64,000 nucleotides of DNA from Pelomyxa schiedti (Eukaryota; Protista; Evosea): the NCBI GenBank assembly GCA_020536535.1, contig JAHLWZ010000526.1, forward strand, positions 1 to 64,000, given 5' to 3'. Positions 15,103 to 57,232 of this stretch are shown here, one piece after another; position 1 is the stretch's first letter, and each line of letters opens with the position of its first letter. The position numbers and the translations under genes are program-made. A model generated the notes under the pieces. The model was not told where the DNA came from. It was given only the letters and a program-made list of their open reading frames with translations, and made no database searches.

Positions 15103-15271
15103 TCGTTGCGATCAAATCAGATAATTGCGGGGAAGTCTGGCACTATGCATACACTCCCTGAGAGTGGGGCACAGGGGCCGCTGAAGTAACTTGGTTACTT
15201 GTGGCACTCCAAAGAAGTCGGGATTCCAAAGTTACAAAACCAAAAAAAAAAAAAAAAAAAAACGTAGCGGC

Positions 15272-21200: not shown

Positions 21201-24200
21201 ATCCTTAATTTTTGTTAAAGATCAAAAAAATACTATCTAATTGGGCTGCTGCCCTGAGAGATGAATATAGACAGGTTACTTTTTCTCTCTAGATAAAGTT
21301 GTGACTGAACACTAATTAGGAACCACGACTCAATTTTCTTTCCGGAAGGCAACTAACTGCACTCAGCAAAAGGCTCACATCTCTTGCTATTCTTACTCCT
21401 GCAGCCATAACTTCGGCACCAGACTTAGACATAGAAGGCTTGATGCCCTATCTATGGGCATGCTTTCCCGACATTCCAACGGCCAGGACATTACCTGCTG
21501 CAAAGCAAGCGCTCATAAATGTTATCGAGCATCTTTCGAGCAACCCAAGTTCATGGGATCCGTTGTCATCACTAAAGCTGGTTCGCACTTTTGTTTCTCA
21601 TCTTCACCAGACGCTGTCTGAGAACTCTGACTGCAATCAAATCCTAAATGGTGAAATTGTTGTCATATTGGCAGAGTCATTTTCTCCAAGTAGTGTTACA
21701 TACCTGTTATATGAGCTCTTTTCCTTCATTCCGCCCCACCCGTCACAACTTCTTTATGGAAAGACTGCCACACAATCAGATTTAGACAGATTTCTTTTCT
21801 GTGTTTCATGCTTCCAACGCCTGCAGTTCGTGATTATTGGTGTGAATGAACTGCAGGAATCTTTGCGGCGTCAACTCTACAAGTGGACCTGTGATGTAAG
21901 CGCCAGTGAGAAGCCTACTTTTTCAAAGCTTCATCTCATTTTCACCAGCCGAGTTGGTGTTGATATGTTCTATTCACCAATTCCAAAGCAAGAGGAGATG
22001 GTGCTCACTGAATGTGTACCCCTGCTCCAAAAAAGCCCAGTTCTCAACCCACGAAACCTACTGCGGTCCGCTGGTATTGGAGTAGTACTGTTGTATACAG
22101 GCGGTCCTTGCTCGGGAAAAAGTACTGAAATACACTCCCGAATGCGTACTGAAGCTGTTGATGTGGTTTGTCTCAACTTCAGCATTACTGAAGGATTTTC
22201 TCTGGGGGATGTTGTTGAGGCTTTTTCCAAAATAATAGCTCGTTTAAAGGGAGGGCCTCGTATATCCTCTGTGGACATTCATGTTGAGATCTCTGCTTAT
22301 GCAGATATTCCTGTAGTTTCAGCACTATTGTACAATTTCGTTGTATGGAGACTTATTTGGGACTACAATACAGGAACTATGTTGTTCCTTCCAAGGGGTG
22401 TTGTATGGAATTTATATGTGGAGATAGCAACTGTGCCCGCTGAAGATGAGACTGATGGATTTGGCTTTTCAACTACCACCAAATTGTTAGAAAACATTCC
22501 CATTCTGCACCACCTGCGTGAAATTGCCGAAGTAAAAAATTCCACTATTGGGATGCAGGTGGATAACAATACTGCTATTGTTGCCAAGTTTTTGGAAGCC
22601 CGGGAGAAAAACATAATGGACACAGGAATTTCATTCATTTTTTTCTTACGAAAACCCTTTCCAACGGAAGTATACCAGGTCATCCAGAACTTTTTTGAAG
22701 CCTCCAACGACCCGTGCAAACTGACAATTTACCAACAACCCAAAAAGCTACGTCACTTTATTGCTTTACTTGCAGATCGATGCCATTGGCTGGCTAAACA
22801 TGCCGATCAGCGATATAAGCTCATGATGAGTGGCTTTGGCAACGTCGGGGAACAGATGGTTAAAATGTCCCTACTTTTCGACATGTTTCTATCTGAGAGT
22901 ATTTCTTTGTGCAATATGACATTAGATGCTGAGAAACAAATATACGTTGCTCGGCAGTGTGTAGAGAATATGAAGGAATCAAAAGATAGCCTCGCTGATA
23001 TACCTGTTCTCCCATGTGCTTTAGTTTTCTGTGAGGGGTACCCTCTTCCTAGTGAGCTGCACAAGTTGACCTTGCCTGAGGCACAATCAAATCCGGCAAT
23101 ACTCAGAGCAGAGGTTGCAACTGCATTTGGTGTTGAGAATCTGTACCACATCATACAATCGCAGGGCTATATTTTGACACCCGATTTTGCACTTAAGTTG
23201 CTTATTATAAATGATTACATGAAAGCAGGCCATAATATTACCTTATGTGGGGGTACAGGTACTACATATTACTTTTCATTGTAATACTAAACCCTAGTGA
23301 AGGTACTGGGAAAACAGAACTTCTGAATGTGTTCAGTGTAATTATCAATGCCAATGCTCGTGATCCAACCCGAAACAATAGAAAACTCATTCCGGACCTC
23401 ATCCAAAAAATTCAGCGCTTTTTGTTCACCAAAATGCTCAACAACCTTCCCATAACACCGGAACAGAAGGTGAAATTCCATGATTTTTGGAATAGGGCTA
23501 TGTCTGAAGAGGAGTTAGCAAAACATGTCAAAGAGTTGTGTGCACTACAAACCGTTGTTGAACCACCAGCAGTCCCTAACAGCATTTTTCCTTGGGTTGC
23601 CCACTTCTTCTGTGAGTGGGTTCACAGTAACCTATTGAAAAGACCCAATATTCTACGAACCAACTTCATGCTCCGTTTGTTTGACCCTGATCTTTCACAG
23701 CCACCAGAGTACAATGAAAGCAGTGCACCCAACCAGAAAGTAGTCACCCATGGAATTGATGACCTTGTACGACTCTTGACAGAGTTCAGGCAAGCAAAGT
23801 TTGATTCATTATTTCATCGGATCAGGATGCACCAGCGTATCACTGCTGACGAATTTCGAACAAGAATTAACAAGGTGAGGGCAGTTGTCAGTAGAATGCC
23901 CCCAAGTACAAAAGTTGTATGCTTCATAGATGAGTGTACATCAACAAGTTTATTGGGGATGGTGAAGGAAGTTATGTGTGATTCGCGGCTTGATGGTGTT
24001 AAGTTGCCAAACCAAATTTTCTTCGTTGCAGCACTGAATAAAAATGTTGCTCCTTCAACCCCAAACCTCACAGCCACCAGTGATTCTGCAATTCTTCAAA
24101 GCATCCATGACCGTGCAATTGATTATGTTGGAATCCCTTCACGCCTCACAAAGTCATTTGCTGTTCGCCCTCCACCACTTTCCTTGGAGAAGATAGTTGT

Positions 24201-27200
24201 GGATTTTGGCAAGCTCACACAACAACAAGAGGAGAATTTCACACGAGGCTTGGTAAGCACACGTCTGCCCAATGAAGATGACAGCTGGAGAATATCTTCC
24301 ATAACTGATACCATTCTAATGGCACAACGGTTCATCAATGAGGCTCGAATACACCGTGTATCAGCAAGTATTCGTGATATCATGCGAGCAATGGACCTGT
24401 ACTTATATTTTATGCATCACAGTGATTACCTTGTTGAAATACCCAAAGTTGACAGTGATGAAATGGTTCACTGGCAATCACTGGTAGACTTTTTAACATA
24501 TCATGCAACTTGATTAACATGCCCTCAGGCTTTGTCTGTGGCATTGACTTATTACTTCAGGCTTCCTTCACGAGAATTCATTGAGCAACAGGTTTGGATC
24601 CCAATTTTATTTTTTTTTCTCCCCTTTCCATTACTTCAGGCACGACTTGCAGCTCAAGACTCTAAGCACGAATTGTGTCTACCCGAAAATGCAGACACCC
24701 CTTGGACTCGCAAGGACTTTGAAAATCATTTCGTAGACCTTTTAAAAAGAATGGAGAATCCTCCTCCTCCTCTTCTGTATAAGTTCGTGGATATTGTCAA
24801 CGCTACCTTGGCCCAGCTCTGTGAACACACAAAGCTCCCTCCTGGTATTGCCAGAACAAGTGCATTCCTAGAGAATTTGTTCTGCTGTGTTGTTTGCTTA
24901 GATGCCAAAATTCCTTTAGTCATTGTCGGACCGCCGTATGAATAACTTCCATCAAATATGAAAGCTACTAAAACAAATATCGAACAGAGGATGCTCAAAG
25001 ACACTGAGCTTTAAGATAGCAGTGGACAACATGAAAGGCTCCAGCTCTCCAGAACCGTTTTACCGAAAATTGCACCATATACTCCCCTTCAGGTAAACAC
25101 AAAATCCCATGACTTAACATAGGTCAACCTCTGTAGATATCAATGTAGTGAACAATCAACCGATGTTGAAATTAAAGCCGTTTATAAATCGGCAATCTCG
25201 AGACAGAAGACTTTTGACAAATCGTCTCCTGAATTATGTGCTGTGATGCTGGATGAAGTTGGTCTCCCAGATGAAACTCAAAGTCCTCTTAAAGTCGTTT
25301 TTTTGTGAGTCTAGTCAAAACTCATATATGAAATCAGATTCTTCATTTCAAATTGGATCACCCAAAGGTCTCTTCTGTTCTCCTTTCCAATAGGATACTC
25401 GACGAAGCAAAAACCAACAGGTATATCAACAACCTTTTCCACGTGCTAATGCTGATTTAGAACCTTGATGCTTCTTCAAAGTGAACCGCCTTCCAAGGAC
25501 TTATTCACTCTTGCTGAAGGTTAACCAACTTACCCTTAACACATATAACTCAATGTTGTAAGGTTGCATTTATGGAAACGACACCCCTCCTTGCCATACA
25601 CGCGATATACTTGAAGCACTTTGTACAGGGTATCAGGAGGAGGTTATTAAGTTCAATGCATATGGGCATCCTTATCCATCACGCTTCTTCCATTTGCGTG
25701 ACTTTGTATACTTCCTTCGATATTTGGTATGCTGAGATATTTATCTTTTTTTTTGCCAACTTGGTGAAGGGCAAACACTGTGCCGAAGAAAGTGGCAATC
25801 CTATGTTTGAAATCAACTGCAAACAAGTTGTCCAAGGCTTGAGGCGCAATTTTGGCGGCATTCCTCAGCAACACTTTTCGTCACTGGTTGGTGTCTTCTT
25901 CAAACATATCAACGCTGCCTTGAGCAAGAACGGTGAACGGGCTTGGCTTCTCCCTGATTTACACAAGCACACATCTGAGATCCCTGTTCTGCGGGAGAGT
26001 TTACTTGAGAAGTTGCAGGAGAAAGATGATCCTAACACAGCCCCATTCCGTTATATCATGCTTGTGTGTCACTGCAATTGCCCTACTTAAATTCTTTTTT
26101 TATTTATTTATTTAAAAACCCTCCAGCTGGATCCCACAGAAAATGAAGTTGCTGTTTCATTACTCTTTGATCTCGGTCTATGTAACCGATCCTCAACACA
26201 AGTCTGCTATGTGGGTGATTTTTGTGATGACGTCGATCAAAGAGTGCGTTCTGCCGCTGTAGAGAAAGTAAAAACTGCTATGGAGAGAGGTACCATGATC
26301 ATCAGCCTCTTTTTCTCTTATGTTCCTTAGGTCATACAATATTACTGGTAAATTCCACAAGCATCCACAGGTAACCAACAACACTTCACCGTAAGTTGGG
26401 ATTTATATTTCTTTCAGTTCGTTCTATGACGTTTTCAACCGGCATTATACAGTAATGCCAGGAAATCGGGCTGGAGGACCTTCACGTTACTGTTATGCCA
26501 ACTTGGCAGCTGGTTCTTTCTCCCAGCCGTGTATCGTTCACGATGATTTCAAAGTCATTGTTCACGTACCAAAGTCCAAGTTGCAGCAAATCCCTACTCC
26601 TTTGCTCAATAGATTTGAGAAGTACAGCCTGGGCATTGAAGATGCACTGCATGAACGCTTATGCGAACTTGAGGTTAACAAGTTGATAGGCGTCCATCCA
26701 TATGATGCCCTCTGGGAGGGTACATTGCACATGGTTGGTGCCTTGCACACACAACAATCGAAGTCAAGATTGTTCTATGGCATGCTTCCATCTGAAACTG
26801 TCAGTTCCTTGGTTCTGAGTGTAGCAGACTTGTCTTTGACACAGGCCAAAAGGCTAAAAGGCGACGACGTCAAGTACAACCTGAATTCCATCATACCACA
26901 ATTTCCAGCAGCCATCACAGCGGACTTATCAAACCTTTCTCCTGTCTCTGAAGAAAATGTGTTTGCTGATTCCACACATTGGCAGCATAATATTCGTAAA
27001 TATGTAGTGGCACTTAATCTGCACTTGCTCCAGCTTGCCAAGCCGGAGTCCATTTATTTCTGCAAAGGGCTGCCAAAAAAGTATCTGGAAACCTACTTGT
27101 TGAAACAAGAACATTTCTCAATCGTCCGTTTCCTCTGCAATTTGATGGATAGCCATTCACAGTTATCTATTGATGAAATGAATTGCTCACCTCTTCCACG

Positions 27201-30200
27201 TAAATTCTGCATATTTACACGCACCAGTGGGGAGTTGTTAAAGTTTGCCAACGACAGAAAAATGCAAGAGCTTTTATTTGCACAATTGCATTTTAAATCT
27301 CCTGATGCTACTACATGTGCAGATACAATGGAGATTTTTTCACTTGCCGAGGTGACCTCCAGCCAGCAATGCACTACCAAAGTTCAAGCATTCTGTCAGA
27401 CACGCAAGCAACTCTTTATCTGTGTGGCCGATTTAGCTTCCAGCACAGCAAACCAAATCAACTACCTGCGCAATGAAATAAACAACCACTGGGCAGCAGG
27501 AGACACGGGACTTTTCCGTGCAGCAGTAATTGTATTGCATTTGTCTCCCGAGATAAGTCTCAGAACCGAGAGCTGCTATCATGCCATTTTCTTGAAAGGA
27601 TGGGACTTCCATTACATTGACTCCCTGGGTTTAAGTTCCAGCACTGCAAAACAAAACTCACATGTGGAAGTGGATCCCAAAACCTGGGTGGCCAAAGCTT
27701 TCAAACTGAATTTGGCCAAAGGTGCCAATACCCCAGTCAGACCACTGCAAAGAGGCAGAAGGGAAATGGTGGAAGCTTTCCAAAGTTTTTTCTTTGAGAT
27801 ATTACAACAGTGCTGTTGGAACATGGTTGGCACTGGTCTCACCCCATCATCTACACTGGAAACACCACGAGCACGTTCATTTTATTCCCAAGTACCTGGC
27901 TCTGAGAGATACACCATATTGAAATCTCTTTTCGAGCAGCAGCCACATCTGCATGAAGGCATTTTGGAGCAGTTCAGTCGGTCGTGGAGCACAGACCTGC
28001 TTGCATATTTGGTGCAGGAGGCAAGTGAGGCATTGTACCGTGGTGTTTGTGTATCAAGCTTTGTCAGTATTATTGCTTCTTCATTGCACATGTTCATGGG
28101 CCCACTTATCAGCTCCGTGTTGCGGATGATGCTTGCGTCATATGGCCTGGAATCAATCTTGAAGATCGGCGAGAGTAAATGTTCTGCTGACTTAATTGAG
28201 CTTATTCATCTTGTCTTTTCTACCATTCCCATTCCTACTGTGGGGAAGCAACTGTTGGAAGGCTCTCGCACGTCAACAGTTGTTGTAACTATTCCAAGGC
28301 TGTACACATTTCCTTCTGAATTGCCTTTCTTCGACACTATCTCTGCCTTACTCCTGCAAAAATTGAACCACGCTTCCTTTGAGTTACGAAATCAACAGCC
28401 AAATAAAATAGCCCTGCACAATAAAATGGAAGAATTGCTAAGTAACACCGCATTAAAGGCAGTTGTTGATCACATTACCTCGCACAGAGAGGTTTTCGAC
28501 ATGTTTAAACGAGATTTTCTCACCAGGACATTGAAACTTACTGACTTGCATTTCTCTCATTTTAAACAGCGCGGTTGTTCTGATAAATCTATTTTGGGTG
28601 TATTTGTGGATATTGTATTGAAATTGGTGAAATCGTTTGAAGGTGGGGGTGTGGAAGATATATCACACCTTTATGTGACCAAAAAATTCCATGAGAAAGA
28701 CATTTCCTACTTTGCAGCCTTAATTACTCCTCTTCAGTTGCTGAACCCCTTCCCCGAAAATGCCTCTCTCAGACTCGACACTCTGCCCATTTTCAAGACA
28801 GGCACAGACATGGAACAGTGGGTCACCAGATTTATTACTACAATTCTCTGGAAGCAGCTGTTTATAAGTGTTCTTCATGATGGTACTGCTGAAACATGTA
28901 AAACATGGGGTCAGGCATACCGAATGTTTTTCAGCAGGCTTAAACCGAGACCCTACTTGTGTGTCCTGTTCTCAACTGATCTGAGAACATTGGTGATGTT
29001 GGATACTTTACGGGTTGTATTTCTTTTCCTGCTCAATACATATGTACCCGGTTCTCCTCTTGGCGAACCTCTCCGATTGAAGAAAGACTTGGGTGAACAG
29101 CTGGAGAAGTTTGTAGAGGACACTTCCAGTTGCCTGCAGGAATATTCTGCAACAAGATTGAAGCGTGCACTTTTACTTTCCTTGAACTTTTTCAGTGAGC
29201 CTATTCTCATTGGTGAAAGGGAGGAAAATACACTCCAAGGTATTTTCGAGTACTTCTTGATGGACTCCCCTGAGAGAGAGACTGTCTCAGATGAGATGCT
29301 CGAAAATGTTAAAGTCTTTTTCAGGGTAATGCAAAACTTCTCTTCATTTATTTACTCATTCAAACACATACAAGATATGTGATGGAAGCTTGCCTGAATT
29401 TTCCTCAAATGCAAGCCTGCGAGAAATTTGTTTGAAAATCGCCTCCAATACTGGGTGGGTTACAAACTTTCTGTGGGGCTGGACCAACTCGAAACCACGT
29501 TCATGTGTGGCTGACATTTATCTTTTGATGGCGGAGGTTTGTTACCACTTTTGAAATAAAACCTGACGGGGAAAAAAGGTGATTGCAGAACGTGTTGATT
29601 CACAGTCATCTCTCTATTCTTTCAAACCTGATCTTTTTGCAACAACAAAGCCAAAGGGCATTTCAACACTGGAATTTTTACTGTTCCACATGCTACGGGA
29701 ATCAATGGAAACAGCACCTCGGGACAACATGACACACTCCAAACAAAACCTCGGACTTTGGTTTGCTAATCTCGAAGAGGCAGTGTCTCACTACAATTAC
29801 CTCCTTGTGGAAGAGAAAAATCCCACTAAATGTTCAAGTATATTGACCGCCACCCATACTTGGTGATATGACATCACTTCAGATTGGAAACGTATAGATA
29901 TTTTAATCAAGAAAGCTGCATGTGCGGCGACAGTACTAAAAATGGCTGCCCAGCAATTGAAGACTTCAAATATTCCTTTGTTTATTCCCAATGTTCTTAG
30001 CACTGTATCCCTGGTAAGAAATCGCTTGAAATTCTATGTGTTGATTTCAGGTAGATATTACGGTCTGCAGATTCTCCAGTTAACTGTAAAAACTTCTTCT
30101 TGAAACATATCCCTTTGGAGGAAGATGTTGTGTCTTTACTGCAAAACCAGCAAGCACTGCAACAACTTAGTTTAAATGATCTGTATCTACATTCTCTATT

Positions 30201-33200
30201 TTTTTTTCAAAGTTAAAAATCTTGCAAGGTACTCTCAGCAGGCTCTCACATTTAATAAAATGTATATCTTTGCGTTCATGACCACATCGTCTCCTCAATA
30301 CATCAAAAAACGTGGAGAAATGATACCAAGTGGGGCTATCAGTTTCACTGAGTTACAAATGATGTACTCCCGGGTTCTGATGAGTGTGAGTATGGGGGCT
30401 GCAGCAATTATTGGTCTTGCTGTTGAGACACTTTGTTCCAGAAAGCGTTGGCCACCATGTGTGTATCAGGATGAGGCAATGGGAGAATATTCTTTTAAAC
30501 AACACCCCAGATGAGTTCAAAATGTGCTTAATCCTGTGCTGCTATTATGAATACATGGCAAAGGGCCTTTCTTGCCCTAACATAATGGAAGCACTGCCTT
30601 ATCTTTCACAGCTCCTTTCCCTCCACAAACTCGAGGAGGCGGCATTTAAGTTTGTGGGCAACGGCCCCCTGGAAGTTTCAGATGACCGAGACCCACTTAA
30701 ATTCATGTTTTCCTCGCGGGCACAAAAGGACAAGAACTTTGATCAAACTTTTGCCCGTTGTGCCGAATTTCTCCCATTATTCGCTCCTGACTTCCTTTCC
30801 CTTCAAAGATTTGCTTGTAAATGTTCTCGCCGTTGGGCTTGGCTTACCTGCCAACAACCATATTCACATCCGAATGTTTGACATTGTTGCTTGCAGTGAT
30901 ACGTTATGTCCTGGTTCTGGTATGTACCGGCGATTCCTGTTTCTTTTCGAGTGATATCTCACTTTAAAAAAAAAACAGCATTCAATAATCGAATAAATTG
31001 GGATTGTGGCTTTCTGCTGCCTGAAAATGGGCAACTGCAAGATGCGAGCCCTGTCATCATGGGGAATTCTCGACGGTATGACGAGATACCTAAACTAAAT
31101 GCTAACCGTTGTAGATGTCGGCTTACACTTAATTCTATTACTTGGAGTGCATTTTGTTGGGCAATGCTATTGGATGAAGATGGCTACAATAAGGCCCTGA
31201 CTTCAGTCAATCATTTCCTGAACGCATTATGTAAAATTTTTTTCAACCTTCACTGTTTTCAAAATATCTCCAGGTGACGTGCACTCCAAGGAACCAACTA
31301 TTAGCACACAAGCCAGAGTTCACACATATATCCTTCATCGGGCACACGGTTTCTTCTCTGAATTACAACATGACCACAATATAATATCGCAGGTTGATAT
31401 GAGAGTTTTAATGAGTTCTTTTTTTTTTTCCTCATCGCACATAGCATGTGAGACCTGATTATTACATTACAGAGTGCCTCTTATTCATGTGGCAGGTCAG
31501 CGGTTTCTCCCAATACCACGGGACTGATAGGAGTTAACCTTTTTTTGTAGTTGATGAGAGGACAACCTGGGCATCCAAGTCTTCCCCCCAATGGAATATT
31601 TTTGGATTTGAATCAAGTGGTTTACTTTGAAGAGACACTCAAATTGTGTTGTCTTGACAATGTTTTTGACAACTACGAAATCCTGAGTGCGCCTTACTTA
31701 AAGGGCTCCCTGGTTTGTCGCACCCTCAGCCCTTGGTAATGTACCAACGTAATATACAGGAGAGTCCACCCAGTGCTGTGTGCGAAATGCGTTGCTTCCA
31801 GAATTCCCTTCTCGATTCACCTGTCGTACGTTGGGACACCTTTCTCGAAAGAGTCTCGTGCACGAGTGGCTGTCAGGCATTACAGGAATTCCTTTCTGCT
31901 TCCCCTCGACTCCCTGTTCTGTTGAATCTGCCTGTTTTTGTTCATTTCTATCAGATGCTAAATGAACTCTTTTCCTTGCACCTGACAGGTACTCTTCTCA
32001 AGTCTCCTTGTCCGTTCCTAAACCCACAACCCAAACAGAACAAGATTTATTCAAACCTCTGCAAGAATGCGTAGATCAAATCTGTCACGAAAATTCAGTA
32101 GCAACCACTGTGGTCTCCTCGGGTTATGAAAGGTTCATCACTGCTTGGAACTCTACACGAAATGTGATTGGGGAGATTCCAGGATGTCCTTTGCAAATGA
32201 ATGAAAGGTTACTGGTGTTTTTGAGTCAACACACCCAAACAAAACCTCCATCCAGGCGATTTGAGCTGACTGTGCCCTTTATTGATGGTGGTACTCCTTT
32301 TGTGGAGCTCATCAGTGTCCAAACAAGTGGACATGCTGACAGCCTTTATCAAATGATACGTGCCCTTTCTGATGAAATTCAGAACAAGCTTCTTAAACTG
32401 AGAGGATCCCACAACAATGGTTTCATTATTTTCAGTTTTTTGGAGGTCTAATAGTTTGTAGAGGAGATAAATCCCTTGGGGCTTGTTTTCGAGGAAACAG
32501 ACGTTAAGTATAATGTAGAATTCCTTCGCACATCTGACCAATGTATGTCTCCCTGTTGGTTGCTTTGCAATAGAACTCTTATAGGTCTCCTTATCACTTG
32601 TGATTCTTCACCACGTGACCTAGAATACTTTTTTATCAAGCACGTGATGCTTCCACCTGATGGAGCTCGTTCAAAACTGACTTTTTCGTCGACTCATTTA
32701 TTGCGAAATGTATGCCGTTACAGTTAGACAATATGTTTTCACGATTAAACAAGGTGATTGCGAAATACCTTGCTGGAAAATGCGTTCTCCAAACAACAGA
32801 ACTCCGTACGGTATTCCCACTTTTTGTTCCAGTTGAAAAAGAGCAACTTCCACCCCCTCCTCCACTCTGCTGTCCCAAGGGGCAGGATCCACTAATATGG
32901 GAACTCCAGTATGAACTAGATAGGTCGATTTACACTGTGTACAAATCTGATTTTTCTCAATTTCCTTTCAGGCTTGATGAAAATTTCCGACTTGCTTGTC
33001 CCCCTTCCGTTTTATCACAATTCGAGCGGTCACTGAAAAGTAAGTTCTTGGAGATTTGGATTGGACTCAAAAAGGAAAATAGGTGAAGAAGAAGAAACTA
33101 TCAGAGACCTCCTTTCTACTGTCACATCATTTTTCAGTGCTATGCAACGGTATATTAGGCACAATCCTGTTAATAGGGATGGTGTAGCACAGACACTCTT

Positions 33201-34897
33201 AGCGTCCGGGTGGTTGGAGTGGGTGCCTACATTGCCAATGCCGCCAGTACTAAATGCCATCCGTACATGCCGTTGTTGCTGGTACCCTACCTTCGATTAA
33301 GGAAAATCAAATAATCTTTGGCACAGCTTGCACGCAATTGGAAATTCCATTCTCGACAAGTACAAAGCCAAGCAATGGCTTTTTAAGGATATTCGCGATC
33401 TTTACAATAGGGCTCTTACAAACCAACTCCAGAACAGTTTGGACGAGAAAATTCAGAGAGTAAAATCCTCCTACTTTGTTTTTTTTTTTTTCATCAAGTT
33501 TAAGGTTTTGGGCGCACCATCAGAAGAAAAGAAACGCTTCTTAGCAGCAGTCACTGCAATTTGCGAATTTCTCGTTCCAAATAAGATACAGGGAAATCCT
33601 GATACTTCATTAGTGGGATACTTCGGTGATTTCTCTGTAATGGTTGCACATTTTAATGTTTGCGAACTACTAATTTTCCCCGCAGAGTGCAAAAAATGTA
33701 TGTAAAACGGACATTGAGTATTTTGTGCTGAACATCAAGAACTGCCACTATTGCTCATTCATGCGAAAAATGTACTCGTTGTGCAGTGATTTGCTCATCA
33801 AACTCTTCAATGTATGCCACTTCTTTGGGTTTTTTTTTTAGGAAAAGGCTTTAACTTCGAATATGCAGGAAGAAATGGAGGATCCCACTACAGATAAAGA
33901 CGAAGTACCTGTTTTTACACATATTTTGAAAACTTATCTTCCACCCAGTACATTGAAGTTGTCCCAATTCCTGTATCGGCATCGACAACCAGCGAGGATG
34001 ACCCTGGGCAAGAAGAAATACCAGAACCCTTTTCTGGTGATGCACTCTTACTGATAGAGGCCGAAGGTTGGCGTTTTGTCAAGTATCCCAATCTAATAAT
34101 TTTTCCTAGACTACAAGCCAGAGAAAATTATTGCCCCTATTAACTTGGAAGGTGTCGTTTTGACCGCTCAAACTGTATATGATGCAGCTTGTGAAGATTT
34201 CGCAAATGCCAAAAGAAACATGTCTCAAATGGAAAACGACTTCCAGTTCACCAACGAAACCTGTGGGTGGCTTTGCCAGACACTCAGTGCTCAGCCACAC
34301 CTAGCACCAAGTGGTGTTGTCATCCCAGATATTCAACGGCTTCAGGAAGTAGCGAAACAAATATACCAACGAGGTCAATGTACCCTAGAGGCGGCTTCTT
34401 CCCTCCACGAGCAACTCACCGTAGATTCCCAATCCATTCAAGCCTATGCCCGCGGCGGGGATGCCACAAATGCCTCACATGCCTGTGACAAAGTACGCAG
34501 CGATGCACACCAGCTTCATGAAGAAGTGATCGACCTAGCCAAAACAGCCGACTCCCTGTATGGTTGTGTTCTACAGGCCCACAGCACAGCACTATCAATT
34601 CCCGTTGCCAGCGAACCCAATGACAATCCCACAGAGCAACAACACCAACAAAATGAACAAGGCACAACACAACTACAAGCGGACTTGCCGGTTGAAGAAC
34701 CCTCAGCACAGTACACAGAGGAAGAACAAGGAAGAGTCCCTGATGCATCAGAACCAACGATGGACGAGGAGGGTTATTCTCTTGAAGCAGAAGCTGAGGC
34801 TCTGGCCGAGAATGGTGTCACCCCAGGAAGTGAATTGGGAGGGACCACAGAAGAACCGGCTGTTACTACAAATTCATCAACCAAGCAAAGTGACTAG
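15272..34897 (+). CDS. RNF213: RNF213/mysterin-like giant tandem AAA+ protein (~19.6 kb gene, many short introns)
   Basis: GPCSGKST (~22100), GYILTPDFALKLL...LCGGTG|TGKTELL, VCFIDECTSTSLLGMVKEVMCD, PLVIVGPP|GCSKTLSFKI, YQCSEQST, VMLDEVGLPDETQSPLK, PTPLLNRFEK: all in RNF213 order. Junctions checked near the 3' end splice in frame to the stop at 34897; not every internal junction was traced. Confidence 0.82.
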
Positions 34898-47670: not shown

Positions 47671-50600
47671 TCACGAACGTTTGTTTCCAATCTGGTCTTG
47701 GCCTTCTTCCTGGTCCTCCTCCTCTTCCTCCTCGTCATCATCTTCGCCCTGTTCCTCCTCCTCCTCTTCCTCATCCTCTTCTTCTCCATTGTCATTGCCG
47801 TTGCCGTTGCCATTGTCGTTGTCGTCTCCTTCATCTCCTTCATCATGGGTTTCCTGAGTCGTGGCTTGCTTGAGGGCCTGATTAAGGCCTTCAAGGATTG
47901 ACTGGGCATAGTCCTCAGACAGATGGTACTTGTCGGCAAACTCGTGTACTGTGTTGGCCATGGATCGCCCCTGTTGGTTGTAAAGGTGTGTGAGAGCAGA
48001 ACTATTATTATCTGCCAGGTAGTTTATATTTATATTTATTTATCGGGGCAATTCAGAGTGATGATTTTTTTTTTGCATACTTGGTATATTTTAAGGGATA
48101 CAGTTTGGCCAGTAGCAATATCAATATTAACTACCATCATCACATCTTCGCCGTTATCGGCTTCCTCTGTTGGTGGAAAACGTAAGTATTATTGTTGTGA
48201 GGGATAATAACAAAAATGACGCCAGAACCAATCATACTAATAAACATAACTATATAAAATCATCACATAAACATGTAACCCACAACAAACCTGAGGGTTT
48301 ATGTGGAACTGCTACTGCTGAGGACTCTGCTGTGGGTGTGACTGCGGTTGTTGTTGTGGACGTGGATGTGGATGTTGGTTCTGGTGTGGGTGTGGGTGCA
48401 GCTGTGGCTGCTGTGGATACTTGAGGTTGCTTTGATGCTACTGCTGCTGTATCCTGCTCCACACCAGCGTTTTGTTTCTTCGGTACTTCCGAACTTAGTT
48501 GAGGTTGGTCAGATTTTACTTGTTGCTCTGTTTGCGGTTGTGTTTGCGTTTGAGACTGTGCCTGCGGTTCTGGCTGTGTCTGTGCTAGTGCAGGTGTTTG
48601 GTCTCCCTGTTGTACTGCCTGGGGTTGGGTGTGTTGTTCCAGTTGTGGTGTGGAAGGAGTAGAAACTTGCTTGCGAGTTATTTGATAAGAGACCTTTGCA
48701 GAACTTCGGGTGGTGCTGGGTTTATTATCTTGTGCATTTGCTTGAATTGGAGCCTGGGTTTGTGAAGAACTTGGCTGAGATGCTTGTGAGAGCTGCTCTA
48801 AGTACGCCTCTGGTTGAAGTACAGCCCCACGGAATTTGTTCTTTGGTTCTCTGATAGCCGGAAGCGTGGAGGGACGAACAGTAGGTTCTACTCTTGTGGT
48901 ACTTGCTTGGGGAATTTCGGCCTTTGTTATTGATATCTTATGGACAGGTCCACTGCTGAAGTATGGTTGTGAAGAGACCTGTGGTACAGGGGAGGTTCGT
49001 TGCTTGCTACGAGGATTTTTTTGAGGGTATTGAAACTGCTGACCGTATATAGGTTGTGAGTACTGAACCTGTTGAGGTTGATACTGAGGAAAGGACTGAT
49101 CGGGATACTGAGGTATCATATAAGGATCATAGCTTTGATTCTGAGATGGATAGTAAGGAATTCGAAAGACTGTATTTACAAGAAAAACAAACTGGGTAGT
49201 TATTGTCTTGCTCCACTAAGATATCTTCTTCCTCAATTTCCTTTGTTGAAATGTCAACAGGAAGGCAAACATTTCAAAGCCATACCAAAATGATTCCTCC
49301 ATCATAGTGTTGTTGCCCTCGGCCTCTCTTTACAGGTCCTTGCTGCGCTGTTGGTTGCCCCTGGGTACGGCTGGATTGAGTACGGGCTGAATCATAGTCT
49401 TGTGACCTTGTAGGAATTTGTTCAGGTTGTTTCTTTGTGACTACCACAGAATAAGGCTGTTGAGCAACTTGTTGTTGGGTAACATAAGAACTTTGCTCTG
49501 GCTGCCTTGGAACTTGTTGGACTGCCTGAGGTTGGTATTGTTGGAACTGCTGGTGCTGGGAAACCTGCTGAGCTTCGTGCTGTTGTATATTCTGCTGATT
49601 GTGGTACTGTTGTCGTTGGTACGGTTGTCGTTGCTGTTGGACATATTGCTGCTGGTGGTACTGTCTCTGAAAGGCGGGCTGTTGTGTCATCCTTTGCTGC
49701 TGTTCGTACTGCTGCGGGTACTGTGCGTACTGCTGTGGGTATTGCTGCTGAGAATACTGCTGTTGCTGCAACTGTTGGTGTGGTTGTACCTGAGCCTGCA
49801 GCTGAGGCTGCGACTGTGCCTGCGTCTGCATTTGGGTCTGCGGCTGTGCTTGCACCTGCTGCTCCTGCGGCGGCAGGGAGTACTGCTGGCGCCCAGCCTG
49901 CGGTAGGCTGGCGCGAGTCTGCGCGGTAGGAAGCGGCCTCCTCCCCATAGGCCCGGCCTCGGCGGGGTCGTAGTCGCCGCCGTCCTCCTGGCCCTCCTCC
50001 TCCTCCCCCCCCTCCCCCTGCTCGGCGTCCTCCTCGTCGCCCTCCTGCTGGGTGCTGTACATCACCACAGACTCTGGCAGGTCGTTGGCGGGGACCATGC
50101 GCCTCACGCCGGCACCTCCCCGGGCGCCTAGGTAGCGCCTCCCCGCGCCCACTCTGGCGTCGTCGGAGCCTCCTCCCCCCACAGAGCCACTGCTAGCACC
50201 ACCACCACCACCACCGCTGCTGCCTCGGCCGTCGTCACGCGGGGCGCCTCTCCCGCTCCCGCCCCCTTGTAGGCCAGAGTAGTTCTGTCTCTGGTACTCC
50301 GGGTCAAAAGAGCGCCTCACCGAATGCGCCTGGCTCCGATAGGACAACGTCTCCCTCTCGAAGCTCGACTGCATTTGTTGTTGTTGTTGTTGCTGCTGCT
50401 GCTGCTGCTGAGGTTGTTGCATCTGCGTCTGCTGCTGCTGGCGCCTGTTGCCTCCAAATTGCTGCTTTCTCCTCGGGAGCCCGCGGCCCTCCATCATCGG
50501 GAACTCCTCGTGCTGCTGCTGCCTCTGCTGCTGGGGCTGCGTATGGTTCTGCTGCCTCTGCTGCTGGTGCGGCGGGGGGGCGGAGCGGCCGCCGTACTGC

Positions 50601-50917
50601 TGCTGGTGTTGGTTTTGCTGCTGTTGTTGCTGCTGCTGGTGGCGCTGGGGCGGGGCTTGGGGCGGGGGCTGCGGGTCGGCCTGGGCGTCGGCCTGGGGCT
50701 GGCGCCGCTGCTGCTGCTGTTGCTTGCGCTCCTGCTCCATCAGTTGCCTAAAGTCGGCCTTGGCTGGGGGCGGCCCGATCTGCGTCGGCGGCTGTCGCAG
50801 CAGCGATTGTTGTTGTTGCTGTTGCGGCTGCTGGGACGATCGTCCCCCCGCGTTGTTGTAGTTGTAGTCCGACTGTTGCTGGTGTCGGCCGTACGCGGAG
50901 TTGCCTCCTGTCGCCAT
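47671..50917 (-). CDS. Gln/Pro-rich low-complexity protein with a small folded C-terminal domain and acidic tail
   Basis: ORFs 49274-50917 and 48250-49119 lead via GT-AG introns to EEADNGEDVMMVVNIDIATGQTVSLKIYQ|GRSMANTVHEFADKYHLSEDYAQSILEGL and the Glu/Asp tail of ORF 47671-47961. Confidence 0.65.
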
Positions 50918-51118
50918 CGGTCTTCGTCACCTTTCCCCTCTGTTGTTTTTGCTTTTTTTTTTTTTGAACCCCTGATTTAGTTGCTCCCCATGTGCTTCTG
51001 TTGCTCTCTACCCTTTCCCCTGTTTCTCCCTCAGCTACATGCGCGCTTTTCTTTCATGGTGCACAGAGCCACAAGGGTAGAGGAGTCAACAGATCTCGCA
51101 TCGACTGTAATTTACAAA

Positions 51119-52428
51119 ATGACAGCGTGGCGTCCTCCTCCGCAGCACATTCCCATCGGCGCCCCCGTCCCCCAGCCCGGCCGATACGGCGCCCCTCCGC
51201 CCCATCCTGTTGGCCCGCCTCCGCCGGGGTACGGCCCGCCGCCGGGTCCCCCAGGAGGCCCCCCGATGCCCATGTACCCGCCGATGGGCCCGCAGCCGGG
51301 AGGGGGCGGCTCCCCCAGGGCGATGATGCAGGGGCCGCCCCCGCCGCCCCCGACGATGTACGTGGCACCGCCTGTGCAGGCACCGCCGATGATGGGGGGG
51401 AACCAGGGCATCGTGGCCAGCAACAGCGGAAGTCGTGGTGGTGGTCATTATCAGCAGGGTCCCCCGCCCTACAATGCACCTCCTATTTTGATGGTATTGC
51501 TTCTGTATCCTTTCAGTCTCCTCTATATCTAGTTTCTCTATCTAACTAAATCTTTTTATACCTCTCATTTTAAATTGTTGTGTTTGACGAGGTTTTTTTT
51601 TTTTTTTTTTTTTTGTGCCTTTATTTATACTGTATCTCACAGCCTGTTGATCCTCTCGTTGAAGCAGTAACAGCTGAGACACTGAGATCACATGTGTTTT
51701 TTGTACTCCACTTCCAACTTGCCGCAGCTACACAGTTTGTGTCAGCATGTGTGCCTATAGAATTGGCAATGGTGGCCTTCACAGCATACGAGGAACGCGG
51801 ATTTATTCACACTTTAATCAGTCCCGGGACAATTCCGCAAGAATTGATGGCCAGTGCCCTCTGGTTGACAAGAAGAGTCCACGGAATACACCACGCAGCA
51901 ACGAACATGGAGAGAAACTACAGCAATGCGTGGTCAGAAATCACCGCGTTTGTAACAGCCAACAAAGTGAAGACACCCAGACAGCAGCTTCCCCTTGTTT
52001 TTGCCAAATCACCCACTGTCCAGCAAAGCTGCCTCGAGTGGCTCGCGAAAATGGCCAACACGGAGGTCGCCTCCGTCTTCTCCTCCGTCTGCTCAGTAGA
52101 AAGCCTGATCGAGCAATCGCACAAGGTCCTGAGCACCACTCCAAACTCGCGGCTGTCAGTTCTCACCATCACGGACATGTTCTCACCCCTGCTTGACATC
52201 AACACGGACCAGCGGCCTGGTGACAGGTGCTCGCACCACGACCAGCTTGGAATGTCAAACTTCAGGTGCGCCCTCAGCGACTGCCGCAGAGTGGCCCGCG
52301 TGTGCATGCAGGTCATACAGCAAATGATGCAGCAGTCACAGTCATCGTCGCCGTCGGCAATGTCTCCTTCCACACAAACACCTTCTTCCCTCGGTGTAAA
52401 CAGAACCACATCTCCGTTCAAGACATGA
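51119..52428 (+). CDS. MAEL: Maelstrom-domain protein with Pro/Gly-rich N-terminus
   Basis: VPIELAMVAF...FIHTLISPGTIP...ALWLTRRVHGI, SCLEWL and CSHHDQLGMSNFRCALSDCRR carry the MAEL E-C-H-C zinc ligands. One intron after PPILM. Confidence 0.8.
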
Positions 52429-52858
52429 AGCTTTTCCCACCCTTTTAACACTTTTTTTCGTTCAAACTTTCATGGTGTGCCAATAATCATCACAATTGTT
52501 TTTTTTTGGTCTTCGGATCTTGCCATGCGCTCCTCAGAGGCTGGAGAGACCACGAAACGGAGACATTATGAAATGATACACAAACACAGGGCCAGGCCAG
52601 TACCTTTTCTGCCCCGTTGATGCACAATTCCATTCCGCAGATTGCAATCTGAGCGACTTGTGCGTTGATTATTCAGCCACCTGATGAAGGAGTTCGTCTC
52701 TGAGAATCTCTGACATTCTTTGCCTTAGATGTCTCAAATCAAACTCCGTGTTCTTGACCGAGAAAGACTTCCTCACAAGGAAGCAACAAGCAGTTGCGCC
52801 GGTCTGTGCACGATACAGTGCACCCTTTGGTTTTTCTCCAGATCGCACAAAGAAAACC

Positions 52859-54914
52859 ATGGCACAACCAGCCGGTGCTCCAGCAGAGAACGCTCCACAG
52901 CAGGCGAGTCCTTGCGGAATTGTAATAATTGGGGGTCCCAGTGATGGCGGGCAAGGTTGTTTCTTTTTTGTTGGTTTGAACTTGAGCTGACATCTAAAAC
53001 CGTGCCAAGATACGATTGGCGGCCCAGCAAAACAAATACTGACCGTAGACGGCTATGATGCTAGTGTTACCTTCTTAAGAGAGTACTTCACGAATGGGAG
53101 AGTACGCCCGTGTGTTTTAGCTTGTCTTCACTCACTCCATAAAGAATGCAGCGGCAGCAAACTTGAAGTGCGTCTCCAGGGGGTACCCGTCACTTGCAGC
53201 AGTTTATCTCAAGCAAAAACTGATACGCGAGCGTGGACTGGAGTCACACATTATTCACCAGTACGTGCCAGATACCATTCCAGAGTTCGAGCAGTATGTG
53301 CGCTCGTGCAAGATCATGCTTCTGAGTACCTCAATGATGTTTGGCCCTTTTGTGGATCGGGTTTGTGAGCACGCAAAGAGGATCAATCCCGCTATTACAA
53401 TCATCGCAGGAGGGCTCCTCATTTACAAGTAGTCCGAGAATCGCTGAACCTAAGGTGTTTGCTACCTAAAATGTAGGTCATACTTGATAAAGAAGCTAAT
53501 CGAAACTGGCAAACTTCCTGATCGTCTGTATGCACTGGCATGGCATCCGATGCTAAAGCCCCGTAAAGCTGATGTTGACTTCGTAGTAGTAAATCGCAAT
53601 GGTGAATTCACATTACTCAAGCTGCTTGACAGCCTGGCTAAGGTACGAAGTATCTTCCCACGTGGGAACTCACAATGCATAGGGAATGGAGGAATGGAGG
53701 ACAATGGACAATGTTTACTGGTACAATGCTGAAACAACTAGTTTCGTCACGAATCCGGTTGTAGAGGAGACAATTTCTGATGTAGAGGTTGATTGGTCAC
53801 AGGAGCCCTTCCCGCACCCTGAATGGTATCTGTTCCCGGTAAGATCTGGTCAAGGCTGCCCATACAGGTAGAATAGAAGACTCCGGACTCTATTCGATTT
53901 GATTAATCCCTTTGTTGTTAAGGTGCGGTTTCTGTGATCATTATGTTGTCGAGCCATCAATGTATCAATGCAGCATCGACTCGGTCATTCGTACCTTGAG
54001 AACTGTACCCCTTGTCAATGGGTACAGACATGTGAGCTGAAAAATTCAATGTTAAGTAATTCCTGATCGTCGTAAGGTATGGTTTACAAATGACAATATC
54101 TTGCTTGGCCGAACTCAATCAAAAAAATTGTTGCAAGCACTCATTGATGCAGATCTACACTTAAAGTGGAATTCTTTCATAAGGTCTCTGAGATCTTTCT
54201 TCTCTCGGGCTAAAACAGACATGGAATTTTAGGGTTGATGCCATTCAAGATGAAGATGTGGCTGACCTTGTAGCAGCATCCGGCTGTGAACGCCTCAACA
54301 TCGGGGTGGAGAGTGCAGACGCCACGATTCTCAATAACATTGATAAGCATTGCACTCCTGAGGCAAATTATCCCTTTCCAGACACTTGGTCTTCTCAATT
54401 GATTACCTTTGTAGATGGTACATCGCATATTCCAGTTGTTGATTCCACGTGGAATTGCAGTCGTTGTACTATTGCTTATTGGGTTCCCGGGAGAGACAAT
54501 GGTTCGTTCCCCTCTGTGATACCTGTTGCTGACTCACATTCCACAGGAGAGTTTCCATCGAACTATAGAAATGGTGAATGCTATTCCTGAAGGAGTTGTT
54601 CAACTGAAGGTTGTTAAAACAAATCCTCAAATTTAAAAACGTAACTTTGTTTCATGATGTGCCACCCCCAGGCATTCCCTTTGGGTGTATTGGCTCTGGC
54701 TCCCATCTCCCAGCAAAGAGCCAAATGGAACCTGGTTGGTGTTGGCTTAGACTGGAAGCACTCGACCATGGATAGTATCACGGCAATAAAATTGTGCAAT
54801 GATGCTCTGGACTTGGTTCGGCCATCAGTTACTCAGCTGCATGTACACGATGGCGAGTGTACCTGGGACCACACGAAGATGGCAAAATTCCTAACAGCCA
54901 GAAACATTGTATGA
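52859..54914 (+). CDS. Cobalamin-binding radical SAM protein (class B methylase-like; resembles PhpK-type proteins), multi-exon
   Basis: PSLAAVYLKQKL, LLSTSMM...HAKRINPAITIIAGG (B12-binding-domain-like), DFVVVNRNGEFTLLKLL, RSGQGCPYR|CGFCD (CxxxCxxC), LNIGVESADATILNNIDK, C-terminal VGVGLDWKHSTMDS. Confidence 0.85.
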
Positions 54915-55230
54915 AACCCAATCACCGCCACGTCTCACTCGTGCACAGTTGAGAATGAGGCAGAAGGGAGCACACGAGAACCCCCCAGACCCCCGAACTG
55001 ACGCGGAACTCTGGTGTTGCATCGAAGAGAATATCAACTAAAACCGTTTTGGCCAACTCAAGTGGTGAGTTGGGACAATAAAAAACTCCAGTCCCGATCC
55101 TGGGTGATGACGATGGTAACGGAAATATTATTTTCTCCAGTTATGCCATCTCAGAAACTACAAGCTGTTGGTCCCTGGAGAACACTGACCACTGTTTTAT
55201 TTACACTATGGTTGGCAATAGGGGAAGGGG

Positions 55231-56558
55231 CTATGTGTGGTCCCCAGTTGGTGCTGGAATGGGAAACTTGTGCGAGAGCCAGAGGGAGGTGACTTGGTTG
55301 CCTGATTTCTGGCAGTGCTGAACCCAGTCAGGTGCGTTGTCCCGGTGAATGACGTTGTGCTCAGTGAGCCAGCACACCATTGGGAGCCGTGTCATCTTAT
55401 GGTTATCCTTTTCCACTCCAAGGTTGCCTCGGTAGAGTGACCCGAGCGGCCCACAACGGCAGGTGTGTTGATGTGTGCAGGGTTCAAGTGCACAAGGGCC
55501 AAAGCACTTCAGAATCCACTCAGCAACCTTGTTTTGATGTGAGTGAGCGGAGAACGTGTGCGGAAAGACAGAAACACACCTGCCAGTTTCCACGGCCAAC
55601 AGCAAGCATCATGTAGTGGTGAGACTCAGTGACTTCGATCACGCCAAATTGCTTCTGCAACCACTTGGCAACAGCAACGTGACCATTTCTGCAGGCATGG
55701 TAAAAAGCGTAGTTGTCCTTTGTGCACACATCCTCACGCGTGAGCCCGAACTCTCTCACCAGGAGAATCAGGGTTTCGAGTTCTCCAGCGGCACATGTTG
55801 AAAGCAGAGTCATGTTGTTGTCACTTCGAACTTGTTCTGTTGTTGGAGAGAACTGGGAAATGATGTGCTCCGCCAACCTTGCTTTCCCCTCCACACAGCT
55901 CCGCCTCAGACAATATGATGGGTTTGGAGGGAACCACTCCGCGTTGTTCTCCACCACCATTGAGTAAACTATATCCAAGCTACCCCCCATGAAAAGGGAA
56001 TCAGCACCAACCTGAAGTTCTGGCTTGGCCAAAGTATCGGGATACTGAGAAGCCATCCAGTTGGCAAGCGTAAAATGTCCATTTCTTTGGCACTCACACC
56101 AGGCGATTTCAATGTTGGAGGCTTCGAAGGGGAAGTTTCTGCAATAGTACTGCACAACAGGGAGGTTGCCGTCAGAACAGTTCCACTTCAGTGCATAGAA
56201 ATCTGGCCTGACGGAAAATGTCTCCACCAGCCAAATCACAACTTCATATGGCCCACGTGCACTAGAAAGCACATCTCGCTTACTGCGGAAGTTCTCCTTG
56301 CCGAACTTCAGCAACACCCACTTTGCAAGAGGCAAGTGCCCGTGTGAGCAACTTTTCATAAACACTTCATCAACGTTCTTATTGCCATTGCACTCCAAGA
56401 GCCATTCCACAACATCGATGTGGCCCTCACCACTTGCCTGCAGAAGGGCGTTTTCGGACTTCTCAGCAGGAATTGAGCCCATCGCGGCAATTGACCTGAC
56501 AAAGAAATCACATGAGTCCAGTCAAGACACATTTGGTTCGAGGTAGGGAGCACAGCAA

Positions 56559-56590
<32 letters not shown>

Positions 56591-57232
56591 ACAGCAACAA
56601 AAACAGCAACAGAAACAAAAACAACAACAACAAAAACAACAACAGCAACAACAACAACAACAGACCTTGAAAGTGACAAATGGCCTCTTTGGCAGCTTTT
56701 CACGAATGCCGATCCCAGAGTGCACTCAAGGAGCTGTGGTGACATTTGTTGTGCAACAAAGTTGAACGCTTGAGGTGTGCCCGCTGCCGCTGAACATTCC
56801 AGAACGAAACATATGTCGTGCGTGGCACTGATTGCGAGCTTTGAAACAGGCTTCAGAATCAACGGAATGCTCTCTGCCACCGTCATCACAATTTCTACAT
56901 TTCTGGAAGGGAAAAAAAAAATGTGAGCTACGCCAACACAAGAGAGAAAGATAGCGCGCAGCTTAACACACGCACAGTGGGATGAGAGATCTCCTCTTGC
57001 AATGTTTCAACAAATACGGTACGACTGAACCCCACAGAACCCCAATCACCTCGGTGAGGCTCAATCTCTTGTTATCTACAACAACAATAGCGTCTCCGCG
57101 TCCGTCATCGCCATCTGCCTCGCCATGTCTACTGTCACTCGCCGTCGTAGCAGGTGTTTCTGCGCTCGCTTCTTCCTTTACTTCGGCTGCCGACGGTGCC
57201 GGTGCTCTCGCAGAGCTCCGCCAGTTACCCAT
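55231..57232 (-). CDS. Ankyrin-repeat protein (multi-exon; 3' end uncertain)
   Basis: Repeats ALLQASGEGHIDVVEWLL, FMKSCSHGHLPLAKWV, WNCSDGNLPVVQY, AFYHACRNGHVAVAKWL. Upstream exons start at MGNWRSS (57232). Confidence 0.8.
56553..56663. repeat. Degenerate CAA/CAG-rich microsatellite inside an intron of the ankyrin gene
   Basis: Run of caa/cag/caaaaa units lying within minus-strand intron 56496-56665 (SLSR|SIAAMG). Confidence 0.85.

Follow-up and report, generated by a model that had tools for sequence, protein, structure and literature searches.

Radical S-adenosylmethionine (SAM) enzymes that depend on cobalamin catalyse methylations that are among the hardest in biology. The class B members whose structures have been solved, among them TsrM (6wte), TokK (7kdx), OxsB (5ul4), CysS (9n1b) and MgmA (9ccb), share a two-domain fold in which a Rossmann-like domain is followed by a partial TIM barrel. 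Enzymes of this class are otherwise discussed for bacteria and archaea alone, and two reviews of cobalamin-dependent radical SAM enzymes do not mention eukaryotes (PMC9204698; PMC12931638). The described family closest to the protein reported here is PhpK/BcpD (TIGR04479), and PhpK requires methylcobalamin and an electron donor (PMC9204698). We analysed 64,000 nucleotides of the genome of the amoeba Pelomyxa schiedti (contig JAHLWZ010000526.1, positions 1 to 64,000 of the forward strand; hereafter the window), in which an earlier note, made from the letters alone, had proposed a spliced class B radical SAM methylase. At 52859-55041 on the plus strand lies a gene of 12 exons and 11 introns whose spliced product is a 549-amino-acid protein, P0001. 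GenBank lists this very protein as "radical SAM protein [Pelomyxa schiedti]", encoded on a contig of 160,842 nt. It is a eukaryotic and expanded addition to a known enzyme class, already deposited under a generic name. Considering all the evidence jointly, we regard it as probable that the locus is a functional nuclear gene of P. schiedti, belonging to a Pelomyxidae-specific class-B-type family that arose when a PhpK-like gene was transferred once, long ago, from bacteria, and whose members would work by a corrinoid methyl relay.

The forward frames of positions 52800-55000 hold open segments in series, linked by short GT...AG stretches. While the unspliced frame is interrupted by stops, removal of the introns restores a single open reading frame (ORF), and an exact spliced alignment reproduced P0001 residue for residue from the DNA of the window (Table 1). 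The introns measure 40-62 nt, ten of the eleven being GT-AG and one GC-AG, a make-up typical for the P. schiedti genome, which has 7.43 introns per gene, 98.41% of them GT-AG and 1.59% GC-AG (PMC8887013). The proposal that a 55-nt GT-AG intron splits the cluster motif CPYR/CGFC proved exact. The start at 52859 also stood, whereas the end that had been placed at 54914 did not, since the TGA at that position lies in intron 11 and exon 12 had been missed: eleven exons joined by hand over 52859-54914 give an open frame of 520 codons. Exon 12 encodes ...LRMRQKGAHENPPDPRTDAELW..., which is conserved in the paralogue P0004 and forms a helix in the AlphaFold2 model. When exon 3 alone was used to query 1.84 billion representative proteins, P0001 was recovered with 100% identity across the exon. 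We conclude that the gene model is not a chance product, because it is intact, an independent annotation agrees with it and homologues have the same exon structure.

Single cells containing three prokaryotic symbionts were the source of the assembly (PMC10579272), and the nearest non-eukaryotic relatives of P0001 are bacterial, two circumstances that would fit contaminating prokaryotic DNA, from an endosymbiont or prey, or an assembly chimera. This explanation is vanishingly improbable and is already refuted by the introns, eleven of which have to be removed to open the frame. In addition, the 160-kb contig carries eukaryotic actin, ankyrin and glutamine-rich genes, the actin gene being represented in the window by an exon-sized ORF that matches Pfam Actin at E = 9e-58, and the identity of P0001 to any bacterial protein is at most ~29%. 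Further copies of the gene (P0004, P0011, P0006 and the pair P0045/P0007) are present in P. schiedti; they are 38-44% identical to P0001 and bring the number of paralogue lineages, P0001 included, to five. P0004, P0011, P0006 and P0045 are located on four contigs other than that of P0001, and the neighbours of the first three are ordinary eukaryotic genes (IF-2B, Ras/Roc, PH/C1 and peptidase M20). The exon structures of four paralogue genes were mapped exactly and compared by alignment column and phase. Seven intron positions were common to all four genes and several more to three of the four, and the intron within the cluster motif occupies the same column and phase in P0004, P0011 and P0006. 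Most introns therefore predate the divergence of the paralogues, and the gene has long been nuclear. The nuclear residence that the earlier note had read from the cluster-motif intron and several more is thus borne out: the P0001 gene is a spliceosomal nuclear gene of P. schiedti, and contamination is excluded. A search of the rest of the window turned up neither a tandem copy nor a pseudogene of this family. P0007 and P0045, on separate contigs (97,550 and 49,252 nt), are 95.6% identical across 436 residues, the C-terminus of P0007 being divergent and shorter; this pair could reflect a recent duplication, two haplotypes, or a mis-annotated or decaying copy.

P0001 has the architecture and, as modelled, the fold of class B enzymes, with a Rossmann-like domain of B12-binding type at the N-terminus and a radical SAM barrel after it. 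Pfam Radical_SAM (PF04055) matches residues 268-428 with 68.8 bits against a cut-off of 29.5, which places the protein in the radical SAM superfamily. In an alignment of 51 sequences, comprising the eukaryotic family and its bacterial relatives, the cluster cysteines, G371-x-E373-S374, G413-x-P415-G416-E417 and the Rossmann residues G152-G153 are invariant in all 51 sequences, and F414, T418, S124-T125, W468, H470, T472 and M473 are nearly so; W468 and T472 are also invariant in a nine-sequence alignment of the eukaryotic members with the bacterial protein P0013 (see below). An AlphaFold2 model built on the 51-sequence alignment (predicted local distance difference test, pLDDT, 89.1; predicted template modelling score, pTM, 0.89) has an N-terminal domain in which strands and helices alternate. 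Its top PDB matches in Foldseek, each over both domains, are TsrM, AprD4, MgmA, OxsB, CysS and TokK (E = 4e-19 to 7e-13), so that the model matches whole class B enzymes and the cobalamin-binding fold, on which the earlier note had made its reading depend, is predicted for P0001. The likeness to the solved class B enzymes is one of fold, with a template modelling (TM) score of ~0.5-0.55 at 13-16% identity, and the C-terminal domain differs. TsrM, the top match, is cobalamin-bound, whereas cobalamin binding by P0001 is predicted from the fold. Of the class B assignment, the architecture and fold therefore stand, while use of cobalamin by P0001 is a prediction from the fold together with family-level Pfam matches.

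Among NCBIfam models TIGR04479 (PhpK) scores best, with 196.3 bits (E = 6e-58) over profile positions 67-468 of 504, compared to 71 bits for the second-best family and 57 bits for the AprD4 family. An exon-by-exon search gave weak but collinear matches of five separate exons to TIGR04479; exon 11 alone, which carries the W-x-H-x-T-M region, matches positions 424-469 at E = 2e-9. At one third of the curated 600-bit cut-off, the score of P0001 falls well short of it; scores were 167-211 bits for the further eukaryotic members tested and 159-262 bits for bacterial relatives. With PhpK/BcpD the protein shares the domain order and the position of the CxxxCxxC motif, but it is eukaryotic, intron-bearing and multi-copy, and lacks a phosphonate or phosphinothricin gene context locally. 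The resemblance to PhpK that had been proposed from short motifs thus holds as far as the best-matching family is concerned, but does not extend to identity: judged by its profile scores, P0001 is PhpK-like and outside the PhpK subfamily.

Among the bacterial relatives is a large, uncharacterised PhpK-like family of ~530-amino-acid proteins with at least 562 members, from Dissulfurispiraceae (L003/P0051), Desulfobacca (P0064), Desulfobacterales (P0154), Cyclobacteriaceae and others. These proteins resemble P0001 in length and architecture, are 29% identical to it over residues 28-478, and share with it an N-terminal 'TVDG..AS' stretch and WKHxTM; they differ in being encoded by intronless single-copy genes, in having clear Pfam B12-binding matches and in scoring 240-260 bits on TIGR04479. 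A generic scan of genome contigs for the cluster motif yielded one good relative, L003, and when the eukaryotic alignment served as a profile against a set of 5.8 billion proteins, most matches were generic class B proteins, owing to the word index. P0013, which comes out nearest to the eukaryotic clade in the tree below, is a metagenomic bacterial protein (locus L001, 10001-17650; JGI 3300027690, contig Ga0209164_1000353) with 25-29% identity to P0001, a long branch and an odd composition; a metagenome scan with P0013 found nothing but P0013 itself. Its gene is followed by that of a major facilitator superfamily (MFS) transporter and then by non-ribosomal peptide synthetase (NRPS) genes, one for an adenylation-carrier protein and one for a condensation-adenylation module, with a SAM methyltransferase encoded upstream. 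The cluster, of the NRPS type and uncharacterised, belongs to an AT-rich anaerobe. A more distant member resides on a Ti plasmid (pTi) of Rhizobium rhizogenes (L173, 5467-7092; NZ_CP118250.1), scores 159 bits on TIGR04479 and is flanked by an isopentenyl transferase gene and by idi and a LOG-like TIGR00730 gene. Plasmids of R. tumorigenes, Rhodococcus fascians and Pseudomonas savastanoi also carry such a PhpK-like protein, and judging from the gene neighbourhood, this protein of gall-forming bacteria is a candidate enzyme for the synthesis of methylated cytokinins or isoprenoids. Searching plasmids for PhpK brought up the pTi protein and a Streptomyces protein resembling ApyD, but no true PhpK. 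The contexts of P0013 and the pTi protein, the sole hints of a substrate class, point to small molecules and to a wider clade that is not confined to P-methylation.

These neighbourhoods bear on the idea that P0001 is a true PhpK/BcpD orthologue, acting as a P-methylase on a phosphinate intermediate of an amoebal pathway akin to that for phosphinothricin. TIGR04479 is the best family for the whole protein and for its exons, and P0013 sits in an NRPS cluster; phosphinothricin tripeptide genes are NRPS-linked. We nevertheless consider orthology very unlikely, given a score so far below the family cut-off, the abundance of higher-scoring bacterial relatives that stand alone with no phosphonate genes nearby, and the residence of another PhpK-like member in a cytokinin/isoprenoid cluster. 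No phosphonate genes (phosphoenolpyruvate mutase and the like) were seen within the window or beside four paralogues, although eukaryotic pathway genes need not cluster, and nothing was found in support of a phosphinothricin pathway.

Outside P. schiedti, the family includes a transcript of Mastigella eilhardi (P0010, EukProt) and genes in two uncultured eukaryotes. One environmental eukaryotic contig (L169, 283 kb), with RNA-recognition motif (RRM) and Rgp1 neighbours, bears a copy whose exon breaks coincide with five intron positions of P0001, including the one in the cluster motif. Apart from P0001, the exon-3 search described above produced seven genuine relatives and no more: P. schiedti contributed three and Mastigella one, and the remaining three are environmental (P0003, P0005 and P0008); two of its ten matches, P0002 and P0009, are repeat proteins and were rejected as spurious. 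Another contig (L088; Logan ERR13493907, 2,414 nt) encodes a full-length, intronless member, P0012, 133 nt from a convergent RasGAP-like ORF and ~60% identical to the intron-split copy on L169; L088 is either a transcript-derived contig or from an intron-poor relative.

We placed the family in a maximum-likelihood tree (LG+C20+F+G4 with posterior mean site frequencies, PMSF; 44 sequences, 541 columns) that did not include true PhpK sequences. The eight eukaryote-type tips (five from P. schiedti, one from Mastigella, one from an environmental eukaryote, and P0005) form one clade with support of 100/99 among bacterial PhpK-like proteins. P0013 is its sister (99/91), the bacterial ~530-amino-acid family follows (100/100), and outside these branch the pTi protein and further bacterial class B proteins, the latter as outgroup. 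Horizontal acquisition, which the earlier note had supposed, predicts one eukaryotic clade that sits within a prokaryotic set of homologues and has few eukaryotic carriers, and this is the pattern observed. By this topology, the data fit one old transfer from bacteria to the pelomyxid lineage that predates the split of Pelomyxa from Mastigella, with later duplications in Pelomyxa; the gene would thus be an old acquisition that has since expanded. For Archamoebae, acquiring genes from anaerobic bacteria is commonplace.

A giant virus might instead have been the route into, or the vehicle among, pelomyxids. P0005 is an intronless member whose gene occupies positions 6159-7925 of a Logan contig (SRR22387900; 14,759 nt), and this contig looks like that of a giant virus in being gene-dense and carrying a C962R-type archaeo-eukaryotic primase (PF23162) and many ORFs with no Pfam match. 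In the tree, however, P0005 is not basal but nested inside the Pelomyxa paralogues (99/95), and this position suggests capture from a pelomyxid host, which fits better than viral delivery. As no close relative of the family was found in IMG/VR or BFVD either, we consider a viral route, in place of direct transfer from bacteria, to be highly improbable.

Several points weigh against the reading of P0001 as a functional, transferred, corrinoid-dependent enzyme. As regards the transfer, an alternative tree that joins P0013 to the bacterial family is not rejected in the approximately unbiased (AU) test (p = 0.107), and the bacterial donor therefore cannot be named from the tree. As regards function, the eukaryotic clade and its bacterial sister family consist of uncharacterised members throughout, the genes of the bacterial ~530-amino-acid family stand alone, with no conserved partner and no phosphonate genes in their neighbourhoods, and the P0001 locus is known here from genomic sequence alone. 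As regards the cofactor, Pfam B12-binding (PF02310) scores 19.1 bits in P0001, below its cut-off of 32.1, and has no match at E <= 0.01 in P0004; a profile of the N-terminal domain matched no solved cobalamin-binding domain by sequence; and AprD4 (6fd2), a radical SAM diol dehydratase that has the same two-domain fold without cobalamin and is no methylase, came first in the PDB sequence search (E = 2.8e-28, over the radical SAM core) and second in the fold search.

The last three observations are those expected if P0001 had a class B fold but no cobalamin, its N-terminal domain being a structural relic as in AprD4 and the 5'-deoxyadenosyl radical alone driving a non-methylating reaction such as dehydration, rearrangement or cyclisation. 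We consider this, the strongest of the rival readings, somewhat unlikely. The closest family is that of methylcobalamin-dependent PhpK, by a wide difference in score from the AprD4 family, and the top fold match is a cobalamin-bound enzyme. Moreover, PF02310 is matched at E <= 0.001 by 46 of the 51 aligned members, and the Rossmann G-G is invariant, the S-T motif and the strand pattern nearly so. Cobalamin use by P0001 thus seems the better prediction from the fold and the family.

Genomic sequence as the source of the locus would also suit a decaying transfer relic, a pseudogene or an unexpressed, functionless paralogue, as would the departure of P0001 from its paralogues at five conserved columns (Q267R, F281H, M383I, P448A and S450A) and the divergent C-terminus of the related copy P0007. 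This we judge distinctly improbable, since the 549-codon frame is intact over 12 exons and every column that is invariant in the 51 sequences is retained. P0001 keeps 62 of the 130 columns conserved in the bacterial family, compared to 60-66 in its paralogues, its AlphaFold2 model is confident, and the family has been kept in several lineages. About a dozen introns and five paralogue lineages point instead to a function that this anaerobic eukaryote has maintained and diversified.

If P0001 is a functional class B enzyme, C272, C276 and C279 would hold a [4Fe-4S] cluster, and reductive cleavage of SAM at this cluster would generate a 5'-deoxyadenosyl radical. A corrinoid in the N-terminal Rossmann-like domain would be methylated by a second SAM, and the methyl group would pass from the methyl-corrinoid to a substrate radical or to a nucleophilic P or C centre, giving a small molecule methylated at an otherwise unreactive C or P atom. 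Electrons could come from the ferredoxin or flavodoxin pool of the amoeba, and the corrinoid from prey or endosymbionts.

The host suits such chemistry. As the earlier note had considered, it is an anaerobic amoeba with methanogen endosymbionts: P. schiedti is an obligate anaerobe with a metabolism based on pyruvate:ferredoxin oxidoreductase (PFOR) and ferredoxin (PMC10579272), and an oxygen-sensitive enzyme is therefore plausible in its cytosol. The suggestion of an undescribed cofactor dependency is weakened, because a B12-dependent methionine synthase has already been reported for P. schiedti (PMC8887013) and a requirement of the host for B12 is thus not new. The paper on the consortium mentions neither cobalamin nor corrinoid, 'B12' occurring in its reference list only, and the literature searched on P. 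schiedti, Pelomyxa and Mastigamoeba does not discuss the P0001 family or cobalamin exchange. The family offers a handle on the chemistry that archamoebae acquired from bacteria, on whether the host needs corrinoid for more than methionine synthase and would hence be tied to its endosymbionts, and on the role of the large uncharacterised bacterial PhpK-like family. We also entertain, as a rather doubtful extension, that pelomyxids run a eukaryotic pathway of corrinoid-dependent radical methylation, in which several diversified enzymes use symbiont corrinoid to make small molecules that eukaryotes are not known to produce. Were this so, methylated lipids, amino-acid-derived compounds or C-P compounds would be candidate products, the consortium would gain a cofactor link through corrinoid supplied by its methanogen or Syntrophus endosymbionts, and these would be the first class B radical SAM enzymes at work in a eukaryotic cytosol.

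Table 1. Positions of the P0001 gene, its protein features and other features in the window (exons and cluster cysteines from the exact spliced alignment)
Feature	Position	Strand	Remarks
Exon 1	52859-52955	+	
Exon 2	53010-53101	+	
Exon 3	53145-53428	+	
Exon 4	53477-53642	+	
Exon 5	53683-53867	+	
Exon 6	53923-54031	+	
Exon 7	54077-54183	+	
Exon 8	54233-54362	+	
Exon 9	54415-54501	+	
Exon 10	54547-54609	+	
Exon 11	54672-54908	+	
Exon 12	54949-55041	+	C-terminal 30 residues and stop codon at 55039-55041
Intron 5	53868-53922	+	55 nt, GT-AG, phase 2; splits cluster motif
Intron 8	54363-54414	+	52 nt; sole GC-AG intron of the gene
Intron 11	54909-54948	+	40 nt; contains TGA 54912-54914
N-terminal Rossmann-like domain, B12-binding type	52907-53685	+	~residues 17-215; exons 1-4 and start of exon 5
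S124-T125 motif	53325-53330	+	nearly invariant
G152-G153 (Rossmann G-G)	53409-53414	+	invariant
Radical SAM core	53845-54573	+	residues 268-428; exons 5-10; PF04055
CxxxCxxC [4Fe-4S] motif	53857-53935	+	CPYR/CGFC
C272	53857-53859	+	cluster cysteine
C276	53924-53926	+	cluster cysteine
C279	53933-53935	+	cluster cysteine
WKHSTMDS	54753-54776	+	family signature W-x-H-x-T-M; C-terminal domain
Actin fragment	4813-5532		exon-sized ORF
Divergent ORF	13882-15102	-	406 aa; GC-rich block (0.59); no Pfam match
Divergent ORF	15191-16585	+	464 aa; GC-rich block (0.59); no Pfam match
Long ORF, low-GC plateau	21440-23284		614 aa; no Pfam match
Long ORF, low-GC plateau	23245-24513		422 aa; no Pfam match
Long ORF, low-GC plateau	26455-29382		975 aa; no Pfam match
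Glutamine-rich gene	49274-50917	-	low-complexity protein
Ankyrin-repeat gene	55520-56482	-	

Elsewhere in the window, positions 16000-34000 form a low-GC plateau (0.41-0.42) with unusually long stop-free ORFs, which are odd for a genome with ~7 introns per gene; the plateau may be a mobile or viral insert or may hold lineage-specific genes, and the 975-amino-acid ORF has no relative in IMG/VR. A strong AT skew extends over 48000-52000 around the glutamine-rich ORF, and an (ACA)n/(ACAGCAACAACAACA)n microsatellite occupies 56552-56662, just upstream of where the ankyrin gene on the minus strand starts.

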